From positions 3,033,648 through 3,097,647 of the forward strand of contig SMSO01000014.1 of the NCBI GenBank assembly GCA_004764695.1: a stretch of DNA of 64,000 bases, read 5' to 3'. This document shows, in pieces, positions 45,761 through 62,781 of this stretch. The position numbers and the translations under genes were made by a program. Each line of letters begins with the position of its first letter. Positions within the stretch are counted from its first letter, which is position 1. The notes beneath the pieces were generated by a model. It ran no database searches. It was not told where the DNA came from and saw only the letters and a list, made by a program, of their open reading frames with translations. The stretch comes from Schizochytrium sp. TIO01 (taxonomy: Eukaryota > Protista > Bigyra: Labyrinthulomycetes).

Positions 45761-46150
45761 GTGACTAAATTTGTAGTGAATAACCCCCCCCCCCCCCCAA
45801 AAAAAAAAAAAAAAACATTTTGTGCTTTTTACGTATCTACTTCGGCATTTTTCTTGTTCTTTCCACAGTATTACATCATTGTAGTATATGTGAGTCTGGG
45901 ACAAGCCTGCTATGATTTACGCCATAGGGAAGCCAAACGGCCGAAGATTAGAGAAATCTTATAATTGTTTTCAAGCCTATTCGCAACCAAGATTCCTTGT
46001 TTAAAAGCAAAGAATTTAGAATTTATAAAAGGAGAATTTAAATGGTCTAATAAATGGACTCGCCTGTGGCAATGCTGCACAAAACTTGGCGAGACAAAGT
46101 CAAATTTCACATAGGGTCTAGCTCTCAGAAGACATGAGACACAGGTAGAG

Positions 46151-48280
46151 CTAGATTTGCTTGTCAATGTCAATGTCAGTGACATGATCGAGGATTTCGA
46201 CCCGAACAGGCTGGGTGGTACTACCATCATCAGAGGAGGAGTCACTTTCATCATCGTCATCGTGCTCATAAACCTCGAGAAGACCAATGCTTGCTGTTGA
46301 TTCGACTTGGGACTGTGTGATAGAATTAACACGAGAGCCTCCAAAGTTGGAGCCCATTCGCGAACCAACACGCAATGAAAGCTGGCGATGTGATGGCGGA
46401 CGGGTAGATGCTGATGGGCGATTGCGACGTAAACCATGAGGGCGAATGTGCGATAAATTTGCTGATGAGCGAGCGTTGCTGAGTAGGAAGTCAATATCTT
46501 GCATATCCTGGTGAACAAAGCCTCCCAAACCAAACTGGTCATCATCCTGTTCCATACGGTTGACAGAGACCTCAAACTCTTTGTTACGTTCCTGCAGGAG
46601 TTTTTCTGCGAGACCAAAGGCTGCTTCGGTTCCAATCTCGTCCTCCTCTGATTGAATGCCGGCATACCAGCGTCCCACACGCACGTTGCCGTTTTCAGGA
46701 TCTCGGAGAGCCTTCTTGACGTCTTCGTAGAGCGTGCGGAGGCGCTGGCGGATAGCACCCTCTTCATCGTGATTAGGTGAGCGATATCTTGAGGCAGGCA
46801 AGCGCATTGTGTGATCACAGAGAAAGGCCTCAAAGATAATGTACACGTCAAAGTCGTTGACACGCGGATGATATGAGCGAATATCGACGATTTCCAAATT
46901 GGAGTCCATGATGGCACGCAGGAAGCGGTCCTGTAGACCCATACTTCCTGTACAGCGCGTCTGCACAAAATAGTAGAGGGGTGGGTTGCCTTTGGCATCC
47001 TCACCGGTTTCGTTACGTGCTTTATCTACAGCACGCTGGGCCTTGCGAGTGAAGTATCCAATAACGAGACGCAGTAAAATGGGCGAAATGATAATGGTGA
47101 TGAGGATGGTCAGGATGATACTTGCTGCAATATCATCTGAGACAAACGCTTCCTGTTTAGCATAAACAACAACGATGAAAGCAAATTCACCGAGCGCGCT
47201 CATTGCTGTAGAGACAACCATGGCATTGAACTTGGTGAGTGGACGAGCCCAAATGAAGGTGGCAATTTTACCAATGAGAGCAATGAGAATCATTGCTGCG
47301 TGTTTGACTACCTCGACATTTGCGAAAGAGCTCACAGGAATTTCAAAGGCAATAGTACAGCCAAAAAAGATTCGTAAGAGCCAAGTTAGGATACGCTTGA
47401 CCTGGCTCACCCAGACGCGCTGTACTTGCTCGGAGGTACAGAAAGAAAGACCAGCAATAAAGCAGCCGAGCAAGTAGCTACCACCTGCAGCTCGTGCAGC
47501 AGGCGCGAGTCCAAGGGCAAGTAAAAAGAGCAATGCAAGAGCAAGGTTGTCTTCGTACTCGGGTTTAACTCGCGGGAAGACAAAGCGGTTGAGAATGCGC
47601 GGGATAATGTAAATGGCGACGAAGCCAAAGCCAAAGAGGAGAAGGAAGGCGACTAAGATGGGTTTTACGATATTCCATCCGGTAGGATCCTCCAGAGCAC
47701 TAAGTTCGGAGAGAAGGATGAGAGCGATGATATCATCAAGCACGGCTGCTGCAATAATGAGTTGGCCTGTTGGAGAGTTCAATAGCTTGCTGGCACGAAG
47801 CACAGAGAGCGCAATACCCATACTTGTGGGTGAAACTGAAGCGCCGACGACGAAACTGCCCTTCATGTCAAGGCCCATGAGCTTGTCGCCAATGAAAAAC
47901 CCGATGGCTAAGGGGACCATACTACCTGCAACCGCGACGATCGCTCCTCTGACACCAATGAGACGCAGCATTTCAAGATCTACTTCGACACCAGCCTCAA
48001 TGACGAGGAGCATCAGTCCAAGTTCTCCAATCATTTTCCATGCTCCAACCTTGGGAACAAATTCGAGGAGGTAAGGTCCGAGGATCATTCCTGTGATAAT
48101 TTGGCCTACAAGTGGTGGTGCGCCTGCAAAGGAAACAAGCTTGCCAATTCCCCAGAGTGCTATCATGAACACGAGAGATGCATAGAGCTGGTCCCACGAG
48201 TATTCATCTTCGCCTTCACCTGAACCCGACAAGTATCTCCAGTCTCCGCGCAGGAAATCCTCCATTAGTGAAGAGAACAT
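46151..48280 (-). CDS. CPA2-family cation/H+ antiporter (NapA/KefB-like) with C-terminal ACT-like domain, 709 aa
   Basis: Multiple TM helices with PPLVGQIITGMILGP, IGELGLMLLVIEAGVEVD, PTSMGI, AAAVLDDII, LLGCFIAGL, IGK and GEFAFI motifs. Confidence 0.9.
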   Translation of the reverse strand: MFSSLMEDFLRGDWRYLSGSGEGEDEYSWDQLYASLVFMIALWGIGKLVSFAGAPPLVGQIITGMILGPYLLEFVPKVGAWKMIGELGLMLLVIEAGVEVDLEMLRLIGVRGAIVAVAGSMVPLAIGFFIGDKLMGLDMKGSFVVGASVSPTSMGIALSVLRASKLLNSPTGQLIIAAAVLDDIIALILLSELSALEDPTGWNIVKPILVAFLLLFGFGFVAIYIIPRILNRFVFPRVKPEYEDNLALALLFLLALGLAPAARAAGGSYLLGCFIAGLSFCTSEQVQRVWVSQVKRILTWLLRIFFGCTIAFEIPVSSFANVEVVKHAAMILIALIGKIATFIWARPLTKFNAMVVSTAMSALGEFAFIVVVYAKQEAFVSDDIAASIILTILITIIISPILLRLVIGYFTRKAQRAVDKARNETGEDAKGNPPLYYFVQTRCTGSMGLQDRFLRAIMDSNLEIVDIRSYHPRVNDFDVYIIFEAFLCDHTMRLPASRYRSPNHDEEGAIRQRLRTLYEDVKKALRDPENGNVRVGRWYAGIQSEEDEIGTEAAFGLAEKLLQERNKEFEVSVNRMEQDDDQFGLGGFVHQDMQDIDFLLSNARSSANLSHIRPHGLRRNRPSASTRPPSHRQLSLRVGSRMGSNFGGSRVNSITQSQVESTASIGLLEVYEHDDDDESDSSSDDGSTTQPVRVEILDHVTDIDIDKQI

Positions 48281-48796
48281 TCTGGCTAGCGTCCTTGCAG
48301 AGAGGTCTGCCTCTTCTGCCAGTTCGCCAAGGCAAAGCTAGAGGCAGGAGCAAACGCCACCACCTCCGCCAGCAGTAAGGGGTTTGTTGGTCACTTGCCT
48401 GATTTACAGTCAATTTCACTTTGCTTTTTTAACAGAGGGGTCTCTTTTTATTTTTTTAAACAAAAAAATAAAAAGAGAAAAGAAAGTAAATTGGTGTGCA
48501 AGTGCTGCAGCTCTTTTATGGGCCACTCCTGATATTCCGAATGGAGCCTACGCTATCAGCTAAGCCTATTCTACCCACACACCACGAGCTTGGCCCTGTG
48601 TATTGTTCGCGTTGTTCTGTTACCTCTTCTTTTTCTGCAACTACCTTGAACAGCCAAACCTTCTTCCTTTAGGATTCTTCCCTTGCTTTACTTTGCTTTA
48701 CTTTTTGTTATTGCTGAGCAGAGTTTTTTTTTTTTTTTTTTAAAATTAAAAGTTTCTTTCAAAAAGCTCAATTGATCAAAGGTGAAAAGAAGTTGA

Positions 48797-55445: not shown

Positions 55446-55760
55446 TTACTGCTGCTGCTGTTGTTTGCAAATGGCCTTGTGGCCAGAACGCCAATGGGCA
55501 AGCTGGCAGTCACGGCTGCAGTAGGTAGCCTTATGGCATCCACCACAGATCATCTCAGAGCGCTTGTTGCAACCGTCGTTGGAGCAAATGGAATCTGCAG
55601 GCTTGTTTTGGTCAAGGGTTACAACTGGTGCGGCGGCTTGCGAAAAGCTATTCTGGCGAGAAAGAGACGCCTTAGGAGAGCCTTGCGAAAAGCTGTTCTG
55701 GCGAGAGAGTGACCCTACAGGGGATCCTGGGCCCTGCGAAAAGCTATTCTGACGACTCAA
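55446..55760 (-). CDS. +1-frame C-terminal continuation of the channelrhodopsin: three LSRQNSFSQ repeats and a MYND-type zinc finger
   Basis: CSNDGC...ICGGCHKATYCSRDCQLAHWRSGHKAIC is a complete MYND pattern. There is no ATG before the finger. The ORF overlaps the rhodopsin stop and continues its peptide repeat. Confidence 0.8.
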   Translation of the reverse strand: MSRQNSFSQGPGSPVGSLSRQNSFSQGSPKASLSRQNSFSQAAAPVVTLDQNKPADSICSNDGCNKRSEMICGGCHKATYCSRDCQLAHWRSGHKAICKQQQQQ

Positions 55761-57495
55761 TGGAACCTGTTGGGGAGTTGGGAACGCTAAAGCTGTTCAT
55801 GCGATTCATGGCAACCTGCTGACCTGGCACCTGTGCTTGGATTTGTTGAGGTGAAACTGGAACGTTAATGTAGGGCATCTGGGGTTGCATTTGCTGCTGC
55901 ATTTGGGGTTGCATCTGGGGTTGCATCTGGGGTTGCATCTGGGGTTGCATCTGGGGTTGAAACGGAAGCCCTGCCGGAGCATAAAACGAAGCGGAGTGCG
56001 GCATGATCATGGGGCTTTGACGAGCGGCTAGGGCTGCAGAGATATCGTTATCATCGTAGGTATGTCCAGTGCTAGACGGAAATTCGGGCATGTCGCGGAG
56101 AGTCTTGCCTGGCGTAGCACGAATGAGATGCAGTGAACCAGCAGAACGACGAATCTCAGACTCGACCTCACGAGCACGGGCAGTTTCGCGCCACAAGTAA
56201 GCAGTCTGAGCCCAGTGGCGAATGAGGTCTCCTAAGAATGCCTCATCAAGAACGTGATGTACAATTCCATGGGACATCTCGTTGTTGCGGTCCTCCTTCT
56301 CTAGCATAGAGACACTGTTGTCGTCAAAGGTGTATCCAAGTACAGGAATCTGGAAAGGCTCCGAGCCGACAATCTTCTTAAAGTCCTTGAGGGAGTTCGG
56401 GTGATCAAAGTGCTTGGTGAGGCTGACAAGAATAGTCTCAAACTCATCAACACGTCCACGGCGAAGAATCTGTTTTGCGTTGTTGAGGTCCATAGCCATC
56501 ACACACTCCACATTGACATCCTTAAGCATGTACATAAACAAACGCTGGTAGCTCACTTCGGGCTCAATGACCAAGACCTTGACAGTCTGCTCAGCGTTCC
56601 ATACACGGCTCTTGTTGGCTGCGTTTTCTGCGTCTTCATCTTGCTCCGGGGTGGGTACAACCATATGCGTAGAGTAGCGCACAGTGTGGCTGACAGGGTC
56701 AAGCTCGTAACCAGTGTAGACACAAACATTGGAGCCACGGCTCTGAAGGTAGGGAAGAAGCTTGTTGTATCGCATGTACCACATGCCGAAGCCAAAAAGG
56801 TTCTTGCCAATCAAGTCGCCAATAGCATGTCCAATCACATCACCTTCGTGGGAGATCACATTTAGAACAGGGGGGCCAAGGAAGTAGAGAAGAGGAAAGA
56901 TACCCCAAGAAATGAAGAGCAGGGCAGTAATTCCGTGGAGCCAAACAAGAAGATCACCCTCTGCGAACTGCTCTTGGCGCATGCGCTCAAGAAAGTACAC
57001 GTCTGTCATGAAGTAAATGACTGTGGAAATGGCACAGGCTAGGAAGATGTAGCGCACAAGATCTGTCTCTTGAAATGTTGCTGTGATACCAAAACCCATG
57101 ACGAGGAGATCCTTCATTACCATGAAGTTAACTTTCACAGGTTCAACATTGGGACCAAGCATACTAATTAAACCAAAGAATCCAAACAGCATAACAGGGC
57201 AGGTAACCATCCATACAATGTATCGGCCAAGCGCAACATCACGAATTTCATCACCAAAAGCAACACGCGCGAATAACCAATTTCCCTTGCCAACAGCAGC
57301 TAGTCCATACACCACAGCAGTCACAAACTGTACATAGATCGAGTACAGCGTACTACGGCCGTAATGCCACTGGTACGTATAGAAGATTACAAAAAAGATG
57401 GATGTGGCACATGTTACACCACGAACCAACGAGCCAGCAATACCTAAAGGTTCATACTCGACCAAGGTCATCAGGACCTCTGTCTCGGTCGTCAT
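55744..57495 (-). CDS. anion channelrhodopsin-like microbial rhodopsin with C-terminal receiver (CheY)-like domain and QPQM repeat
   Basis: TM3 RYIVWMVTCPVML (cf. ChR2 RYAEWLLTCPVIL, with the counterion replaced by Val), TM4 Asp in MKDLLV, TM6 SWGIFPLLYFLGP, TM7 HAIGDLIGKNLFG (retinal Lys). Receiver-like fold from VKVLVIE (56583) to LIRHW (~56212). Confidence 0.92.
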   Translation of the reverse strand: MTTETEVLMTLVEYEPLGIAGSLVRGVTCATSIFFVIFYTYQWHYGRSTLYSIYVQFVTAVVYGLAAVGKGNWLFARVAFGDEIRDVALGRYIVWMVTCPVMLFGFFGLISMLGPNVEPVKVNFMVMKDLLVMGFGITATFQETDLVRYIFLACAISTVIYFMTDVYFLERMRQEQFAEGDLLVWLHGITALLFISWGIFPLLYFLGPPVLNVISHEGDVIGHAIGDLIGKNLFGFGMWYMRYNKLLPYLQSRGSNVCVYTGYELDPVSHTVRYSTHMVVPTPEQDEDAENAANKSRVWNAEQTVKVLVIEPEVSYQRLFMYMLKDVNVECVMAMDLNNAKQILRRGRVDEFETILVSLTKHFDHPNSLKDFKKIVGSEPFQIPVLGYTFDDNSVSMLEKEDRNNEMSHGIVHHVLDEAFLGDLIRHWAQTAYLWRETARAREVESEIRRSAGSLHLIRATPGKTLRDMPEFPSSTGHTYDDNDISAALAARQSPMIMPHSASFYAPAGLPFQPQMQPQMQPQMQPQMQPQMQQQMQPQMPYINVPVSPQQIQAQVPGQQVAMNRMNSFSVPNSPTGSIESSE

Positions 57496-60400: not shown

Positions 60401-61017
60401 AATTATTGTGCACACGTCTTTCGAGAACTCTTAAAATGTATAACTCGAAATGTCATTCTTGTGCACATACCGGTCATATTCCTCGATTGTTATATTGGCA
60501 CCTATATTCTCATAGTTTATTTAGTTATCTCAAGTGCCCTCTCTTTCGCGTGCGAGCGCGAATACTGCAGTCTAGGCCAGATAGATCAAGGTTAACTCCC
60601 CCTAAGATAAGTAGCGAAGTGATCACGCCAGAAATACAGCGAAAACGAAGGACAAAGACTAGCCGAGATAGCACAAGTGATATCAAAATCAACATCGATT
60701 CTCTTCTAGAGAGGGCAGTGGATCCTTCGGAAGTCAAGGTAAGACTTCTGGATATGGTCACAAGTTGCCGGAGGCAAGCTCTAAGATCACTCACCCACTG
60801 AGGACAACTTATATGAAAATAATCCATTGACTCGCATATAGCTGCTTGCTCACGACATCAATACTGGTGATTTAAGGGTTATCAAAGAACAATAGAAGAG
60901 CGACCTGTTGCGAAGGTGTCTTGCTTGCAGGATCAACTATATTAGATTCACTGTCTTGGAACGTGGCTGCAATAGCTTCAATTTTTGCTGCGTAGGAAGT
61001 GAACAACGTACTTTAAA

Positions 61018-62781
61018 ATGGACAACTCTGGAGAATATAGCCAGGAGGAATTTGAAGACGATACACAACAGCTTCGCTACTCGTCTCAAGGCCGTAAAAC
61101 TAATGCACAAAATCCAGAAGATTATTCTGAAGATGCTGATGAGTATGAAGATATTGAGTCATCTGAAGACGAGGATGAAAGCGCCGGGATGGGCGAACAA
61201 GAGCAAATAGAAAAACTTCGCCTTGCGAATGATGTTTTACGAAAACAGCTTAAGGACTTTGGTCGTGTTTTCGAGGCGAGTATGAACAGCAAACCTGGAG
61301 CAGGACTCGCTTACAAGGCTAGTTCTGGTGGTTCATCTGATAATGGAAAACGATCTTTGCGAGCAATTATTCAGTCTAAGCAAAAACAAGTGCAAGGGAT
61401 GCAGAAAAAGCTGGATGCATACAAGAAAAACAACCAACAGTTGAAAAGACAAATGAAGGAAGCATTCACAACAGACCGCGTCCTCTTACTTACGAATGAA
61501 GTTGAGGAAAAACAAAGGCAAATCGATCAACTTGTGGAGGACAACCGAAGCTTACAAACCTTGCAGAGAACACACGCCAAGCGCATTGCAAAACAACAAG
61601 AGTCTCGAGGAAATTGGTCGACCAAGCTCACGAATCTTCAAGAAGAACTTCGTGTCGCTCGGGAAACCTTGCGTAAATACCGTGAGAAGTCAAGATTTGC
61701 CGAGGAAGAATCCAATCGTCATCGAGAGCACATTATGAAGCTAACAGATCGCAACAAGGAACTCAAGTCAGAAATTAAACGATATGAATCAGCGAATGGA
61801 AAGGCAAAGACTCGCGAAACACTTGATGCAGAGGAGCAGCAGTCCCGCTGGGACGAAGAAAGGCGTAAGCTTGAGCATGCTATTCAGGTCCTTGAGAAGA
61901 GCAATAAACAAGAGCGAATTAAAGCACATCAAGCTACTAAGCAACTAGAGGTCAAGGCACGTGAACACGAATCTGCAATCGAGAAAATGCAGACTGAGCT
62001 TGATCTACGTGAAAAGGATATGCGTTTTCAGCTTGTGCAGATTAAAAAGCTCAAGAAGGGTTTGCGCGAGCTTGCCCTTGGAGACACCCCTCTTAACATA
62101 GGCGACACACCTTGGTCGAGCAATATGCACCATTTCCTTAACAGTAGCGTTAACTTTGATGATGATGAAGGGAATGATAAACAGAGTCCAGCTGTTTCTC
62201 CACATCAAAGATCGTCACCAAAACATTCAGTGCAGTCGCCAACTATTTCTAATTCAGGTCGCGAACCAGCATCCCCCAGCACATCTCCAAAGCCTCGACC
62301 TGGTCCCCCCGAAGGCCGCAGCCCCCCAATTGAGCGTGGGCCTCGAGTCGCGCGCACCAGTGCATCTGCAGCCAGTGCAATTCCAAGTACAACACAGGAT
62401 TCCTCCGAATATGACGTCAAGAAAAGTGAAGACATGACTCAAGAGGAAGAAAATGGCTCTACTGAAGCTGGTGAAACAACCGAAAACGTGAATGCAAATG
62501 ATGCTGAAGTAGTCGATGACTATCATGAGGAACCCATAATTGCAAGGAACAAAACAACGGAATCCATCAACGAGCAGCACAACAATCGAGAAAGAATTGA
62601 GGATGAAGTTGATCAAACACTTGAAGATGAGGACTACACTGAAGGTGATAACATCGAGGATAATGACTCATCTGCCTCACGAACTAATTCAGGTACAGCA
62701 TCAGATATTTCCTCTTCCCAACCAAAGTCTGCATTCGCAAAACCAATGATGAAATCGAAAAAGAAGAAGAAGAAGTTTTAA
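61018..62781 (+). CDS. coiled-coil protein with a lebercilin (LCA5)-like domain, probably ciliary/microtubule-associated, 587 aa
   Basis: LTNEVEEKQRQIDQLVEDNRSLQTLQRTHAKRI...LQEELRVARETLRKYREK resembles the lebercilin core LxNExxELxxxLxELxxENKxLKxLQxRQxKAL...ExLRKxQEK. Acidic N-terminus and basic C-terminus. Confidence 0.7.
   Translation: MDNSGEYSQEEFEDDTQQLRYSSQGRKTNAQNPEDYSEDADEYEDIESSEDEDESAGMGEQEQIEKLRLANDVLRKQLKDFGRVFEASMNSKPGAGLAYKASSGGSSDNGKRSLRAIIQSKQKQVQGMQKKLDAYKKNNQQLKRQMKEAFTTDRVLLLTNEVEEKQRQIDQLVEDNRSLQTLQRTHAKRIAKQQESRGNWSTKLTNLQEELRVARETLRKYREKSRFAEEESNRHREHIMKLTDRNKELKSEIKRYESANGKAKTRETLDAEEQQSRWDEERRKLEHAIQVLEKSNKQERIKAHQATKQLEVKAREHESAIEKMQTELDLREKDMRFQLVQIKKLKKGLRELALGDTPLNIGDTPWSSNMHHFLNSSVNFDDDEGNDKQSPAVSPHQRSSPKHSVQSPTISNSGREPASPSTSPKPRPGPPEGRSPPIERGPRVARTSASAASAIPSTTQDSSEYDVKKSEDMTQEEENGSTEAGETTENVNANDAEVVDDYHEEPIIARNKTTESINEQHNNRERIEDEVDQTLEDEDYTEGDNIEDNDSSASRTNSGTASDISSSQPKSAFAKPMMKSKKKKKKF

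Follow-up and report, generated by a model that had tools for sequence, protein, structure and literature searches.

In the genome assembly of Schizochytrium sp. TIO01, the gene that we assign to the anion channelrhodopsin AlACR3 is written with a single extra base, which would truncate the protein and leaves its last 104 residues stranded in the +1 frame. We consider it about as probable as not (roughly 0.5) that this is a real, recent and strain-specific 3'-truncating allele, the presence of the base in the cells being what we infer from the comparisons below. Under this reading the extra base, at 55758-55764, is unprogrammed and would have arisen by an insertion such as the duplication of a C that turns TCA into TCCA. 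The frame break is an ordinary mutation or an assembly error and not a recoding site. All positions refer to the analyzed window, a 64,000-nucleotide stretch of contig SMSO01000014.1.

The gene lies on the minus strand. As assembled, its frame-0 ORF spans 55744-57495, from an ATG at 57495 to a TAG stop at 55744-55746, and encodes a truncated AlACR3-type channelrhodopsin of 583 aa, as judged from the ORF translation, the Pfam search and the alignment to a natural homolog, P0004. Its C-terminal end reads ...PNSPTGSIESSE / ...SVPNSPTGSIESSE, followed by the TAG. The stretch GGTTCCATTGAG at 55767-55756 is divided into TCC (55764-55762), A (55761) and TTG (55760-55758), and the resulting break TCC-A-TTG holds one base above what contiguous relatives need; the assembled sequence across it is GGTTCCATTG. 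In the protein alignment, frame-0 homology stops at ...PTGS and +1-frame homology begins at LSRQNSF. The frame-0 codons at the break are GGU UCC AUU GAG UCG UCA GAA UAG, and the 583-aa product thus ends with the five out-of-frame residues IESSE. The break is located at 85% of the coding length, and joining 578 aa of frame 0 to 104 aa of frame +1 gives a protein of 682 aa.

The +1 frame is open on the minus strand from 55796 down to 55446, with 116 codons and a TAA at 55446-55448, and this stretch contains the stranded C-terminal tail. Upstream it is closed by a TGA at 55797-55799, which precedes the TTG by exactly 12 codons, and the overlap of the two open frames is limited to 50 nt (55796-55747). 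In the +1 ORF no Met precedes the one within its zinc finger, so that the tail lacks a start codon of its own. An earlier note, made from the letters of this stretch, had described the frame-0 ORF with its TAG stop, the break, the repeats and MYND finger in the +1 frame, the 682-aa sum, the closing TGA about 12 codons upstream and the lack of an ATG before the finger, and all of these are confirmed in the sequence.

Two Pfam domains were found on the two sides of the break. The seven-helix microbial rhodopsin domain that forms the channel (Bac_rhodopsin, PF01036, E = 7e-25) covers residues 28-242 of the 583-aa ORF, at 56770-57414 on the minus strand. The retinal lysine of helix 7 is present in the motif DLIGKN, and the solved structures nearest in sequence are those of the channelrhodopsins C1C2, ChR2 and iC++, with E-values from 1e-14 to 1e-15. 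A conserved cytoplasmic domain follows at about residues 300-470 (56086-56598, minus strand), where alignments show it to be common to the AlACR3-type gene and its two paralogs, with homolog matches extending to about residue 435-450. It has been described as weakly receiver (REC)-like, with E = 0.01 (bioRxiv 10.1101/2020.04.15.043158), and Pfam gave no match in this part of the 583-aa ORF. Further downstream, a 12-nt tandem repeat of 7.1 copies at 55875-55959 (minus strand), identified by repeat search and alignment, encodes PQMQ units, one more than in the homologs P0004 and P0002.

The tail opens with three LSRQNSFSQ repeats at 55760-55734, 55709-55683 and 55664-55638 (55638-55760 in all, minus strand), as read from the +1-frame translation. 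Each of them contains an R-x-x-S motif of the basophilic kinase type, so that they may serve as phosphorylation sites, and the repeats are kept in the aligned ortholog from Hondaea fermentalgiana. A degenerate fourth copy, NRMNSFS, is present just upstream in frame 0, and the motif therefore flanks the break on either side. The repeats are followed by a MYND zinc finger (zf-MYND, PF01753) at residues 63-98 of the +1 ORF (55467-55574, minus strand), with E = 2.4e-9, a score of 37.5 bits against a gathering cut-off of 22.7, and coverage of profile positions 3-39 of 39. The MYND finger is a protein-binding module. A MYND tail on a channelrhodopsin appears to be undescribed in the literature that we searched.

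A search of the whole genome (64.07 Mb in 37 contigs) with the rhodopsin domain returned exactly three genes. The other two encode 696 and 635 aa from their first ATGs and are both located on the contig C31. Three ACRs are known from the thraustochytrid Aurantiochytrium limacinum, and its AlACR1 and AlACR2 have 696 and 635 aa, respectively (Govorunova et al. 2020, bioRxiv 10.1101/2020.04.15.043158). Because the lengths of the C31 genes match those of AlACR1 and AlACR2, the third gene, at the break, is assigned to AlACR3 by elimination, on gene number and protein length. Like the published AlACR3, this gene completes a set of exactly three ACR genes, and it shares 99% identity with the A. limacinum proteins P0004 and P0002. 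AlACR3 is an anion channelrhodopsin that absorbs blue light, at about 485 nm (Govorunova et al. 2020), and the protein (JGI protein 143491) was detected in zoospore proteomes of strain ATCC MYA-1381 (PMC12221091). AlACR1 (696 aa; L004:217-2304, minus strand) and AlACR2 (635 aa; L005:1432-3336, plus strand) are arranged head to head, a few kb apart, at about 1,325,000-1,329,400 of C31. Both possess the conserved cytoplasmic domain and lack the MYND finger, which makes the MYND tail peculiar to the AlACR3 clade. No second copy or haplotig of the tail was found in the genome search, which gave only the AlACR3 locus and an unrelated MYND gene. The latter match is located on contig C33 at 4735899-4736039 (plus strand), in a 459-codon frame, with 40% identity and E = 6.4e-9.

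Compared at the protein level, six relatives from at least four lineages, P0004, P0002, P0001, P0003, P0010 and P0011, carry the rhodopsin and the MYND finger in a single frame. The 583-aa piece and the tail were searched separately, and the natural contiguous P0004 was used as a stand-in for the whole protein. P0004, with 670 aa and 99% identity, was predicted on Logan contigs that reach 31 kb in length and belongs to the cluster of P0002, the 436-aa product of an A. limacinum transcript (MMETSP0958) with 98-99% identity. P0001 is the Hondaea ortholog, with 680 aa and 73% identity over 99% of the query, and P0003, of 630 aa, was found with the 583-aa piece at 46% identity. The more distant homologs P0010 and P0011, obtained by scanning 1.84 billion representative proteins with P0004, also have rhodopsin and MYND in one chain. 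Pfam places both domains in one chain in P0001, P0003 and P0004; the N-terminus of P0002 is missing and its MYND finger is present. The public name of P0001, "Programmed cell death protein 2", is misleading, as it reflects only the MYND finger of a protein that is a channelrhodopsin.

At the junction, P0004 and P0002 read ...SVPNSPTGSLSRQNSFSQGPGSPVGS..., which is frame 0 up to GS and then the +1 frame from L, with nothing gained or lost. The Hondaea protein P0001 reads ...SVPNSPVGSLSRQNSFSQ... at the same place and has its parts in the same order, with the rhodopsin followed by the cytoplasmic domain, a Q/P-rich linker, three SRQNSF repeats and the MYND finger; it differs from our gene in being contiguous in one frame. 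The product of the +1 frame is residue-for-residue identical to the tails of P0004 and P0002, and so the open +1 frame is not a matter of chance. Further evidence comes from the repeats themselves. Of the 27 bases of LSRQNSFSQ unit 1, 7 are different in unit 2 and 6 in unit 3, and all of these differences are synonymous in the +1 frame, which indicates that the tail and the channel have long been translated in the same phase. These comparisons show the one-frame state to be ancestral, and in the natural protein the rhodopsin, the repeats and the MYND finger are fused in one frame. An exact look-up in the protein collection found neither the 583-aa product nor the 104-aa tail ORF, nor the AlACR1 and AlACR2 of this genome, and it turned up no independent assembly of the strain. 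A metagenome pattern scan allowing zero to two bases at the break gave no match.

The earlier note had offered three readings of the break, and two of them, a natural truncating allele and an assembly indel, stand after the comparison with relatives. In favor of the allele is the way in which the genome differs from the A. limacinum proteins of the Logan and MMETSP data. We found four conservative substitutions in 691 residues of AlACR1 (Y/F, I/V, Q/H and I/V), one in 635 of AlACR2 (Y/F), and in AlACR3 two conservative substitutions (D/N and S/T) together with the 12-nt repeat indel, that is, the one additional PQMQ unit relative to P0004 and P0002. Such differences resemble natural variation under purifying selection rather than sequencing noise. 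The difference in PQMQ units is a repeat-length polymorphism between strains, and it indicates that genuine indel polymorphism exists within the AlACR3 gene. The conservative substitutions and the 12-nt indel thus mark the genome as belonging to a different strain or haplotype, in which the additional base may be real. The location of the break at the far end of the coding sequence also favors a real allele, since truncations are best tolerated there. Other observations weigh against it. The intact tail, identical in protein to that of the other strain, fits an assembly error and a very recent mutation equally well, and the conservation of rhodopsin plus MYND over several lineages means that selection should oppose the loss.

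The alternative that survives best, to which we give somewhat less than an even chance, is an error of assembly or consensus, in which the cells carry a normal one-frame gene of 682 aa and the base was added by long-read consensus or polishing. The tail is intact over its 116 codons and identical to that of P0004, all relatives are contiguous, and the multi-megabase contigs of this assembly suggest that it was made from long reads. In long-read assemblies, the errors that remain are usually single-base indels. However, the site is outside any long homopolymer, the usual place of such errors, and the other large ORFs in the window, with 4847, 1736, 1202, 728, 692, 624 and 592 aa, amount to about 40 kb free of frame breaks and contain full-length Pfam domains where tested. 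These intact neighbors argue that the assembly is not riddled with indels, and the remaining differences from the reference strain, being conservative substitutions, point to real variation and not to noise.

The third reading, a programmed +1 ribosomal frameshift near UCC-A-UUG or elsewhere in the 50-nt window, which would yield a tailed and a tail-less isoform of the channel, is very improbable. The geometry would permit it, as both frames are open between 55796 and 55747 and the tail lacks its own start codon. Well-known +1 sites are those of antizyme (UCC-UGA), yeast Ty1 (CUU-AGG-C) and Ty3 (GCG-AGU-U), and Euplotes (AAA-UAR). The present site resembles them in having a downstream domain in the +1 frame and, as in antizyme, a UCC codon, and in nothing else: the A site holds neither a stop nor an evidently slow codon, the break is not conserved, and a stimulatory structure is missing. 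UCC is followed by AUU, which is not a stop codon and not evidently rare, and UCC AUU GAG matches none of these motifs, nor any other known +1 motif. For the 131 nt from the site onward, the predicted minimum free energy of -33.2 kcal/mol is no better than the mean of the shuffled sequences (-33.16 kcal/mol; z = -0.01). The same note had proposed aligning the orthologs to see whether the break is conserved, taking orthologs contiguous in one frame as evidence against programming. At the protein level the break is absent from the conspecific P0004 and from the five further relatives, which leaves a programmed frameshift unsupported, and the synonymous divergence of the repeats likewise speaks for a tail that has long been read as ordinary in-frame sequence.

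A mixed situation, in which the base is real and the tailed channel is partly rescued through +1 frameshifting at a low level or through cryptic excision of 67 nt, so that two isoforms arise, seems similarly far-fetched. The least probable reading is a short 3n+1 intron that restores the frame, for example the 67-nt GTTGCC...CGTCAG at 55811-55745 (minus strand): its removal would join ...PGQQ to NSFSQGPGS... in frame, but the stretch encodes VAMNRMNSFSVPNSPTGSLSRQ, which is kept in the transcript-derived P0002 and conserved in Hondaea, and no CTAAC branch site was found within the 67 nt. The note was right to argue against an intron from the peptide repeat that spans the junction. The GT...AG bounds of 55745-55811 look like a coincidence, though they might allow cryptic rescue splicing in this strain.

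Returning to the truncating allele, the gene as written would give a 583-aa protein in which the channel and the conserved cytoplasmic domain are retained; it would lack the MYND module and the last three SRQNSF repeats and would close with five foreign residues. Residues 1-300 of the A. limacinum ACRs, AlACR3 included, are enough for photocurrents (bioRxiv 10.1101/2020.04.15.043158), and because of this the truncated channel should still conduct. The loss would thus likely be one of regulation or anchoring rather than of conductance. Should the base be genuine, the strain would be a naturally occurring AlACR3 mutant that lacks the tail, and it could serve to study the role of the SRQNSF repeats and the MYND finger in the light sensing of zoospores. 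An erroneous base would point to a place in the assembly that requires polishing. Annotators working from this assembly would report AlACR3 as truncated and overlook its tail. The finding carries some weight for annotation and little for biology; the gene is already known, and the lesion or artefact is an ordinary one.

Elsewhere in the window, a possible second frame break, between the minus-strand ORFs 45913-47025 and 46154-48337, was considered and rejected, as the Na+/H+ exchanger domain (PF00999) is complete in the longer, 728-aa ORF. The other one, a 371-codon frame, overlaps the 3' part of the exchanger gene by 872 nt; no Pfam domain was found in it, and it probably represents a shadow ORF. 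On the plus strand, at 61003-62778 and about 3.5 kb from the gene of the zoospore channelrhodopsin, we also found a gene for a lebercilin-like ciliary protein (PF15619, E = 4.9e-8, just under the gathering score).
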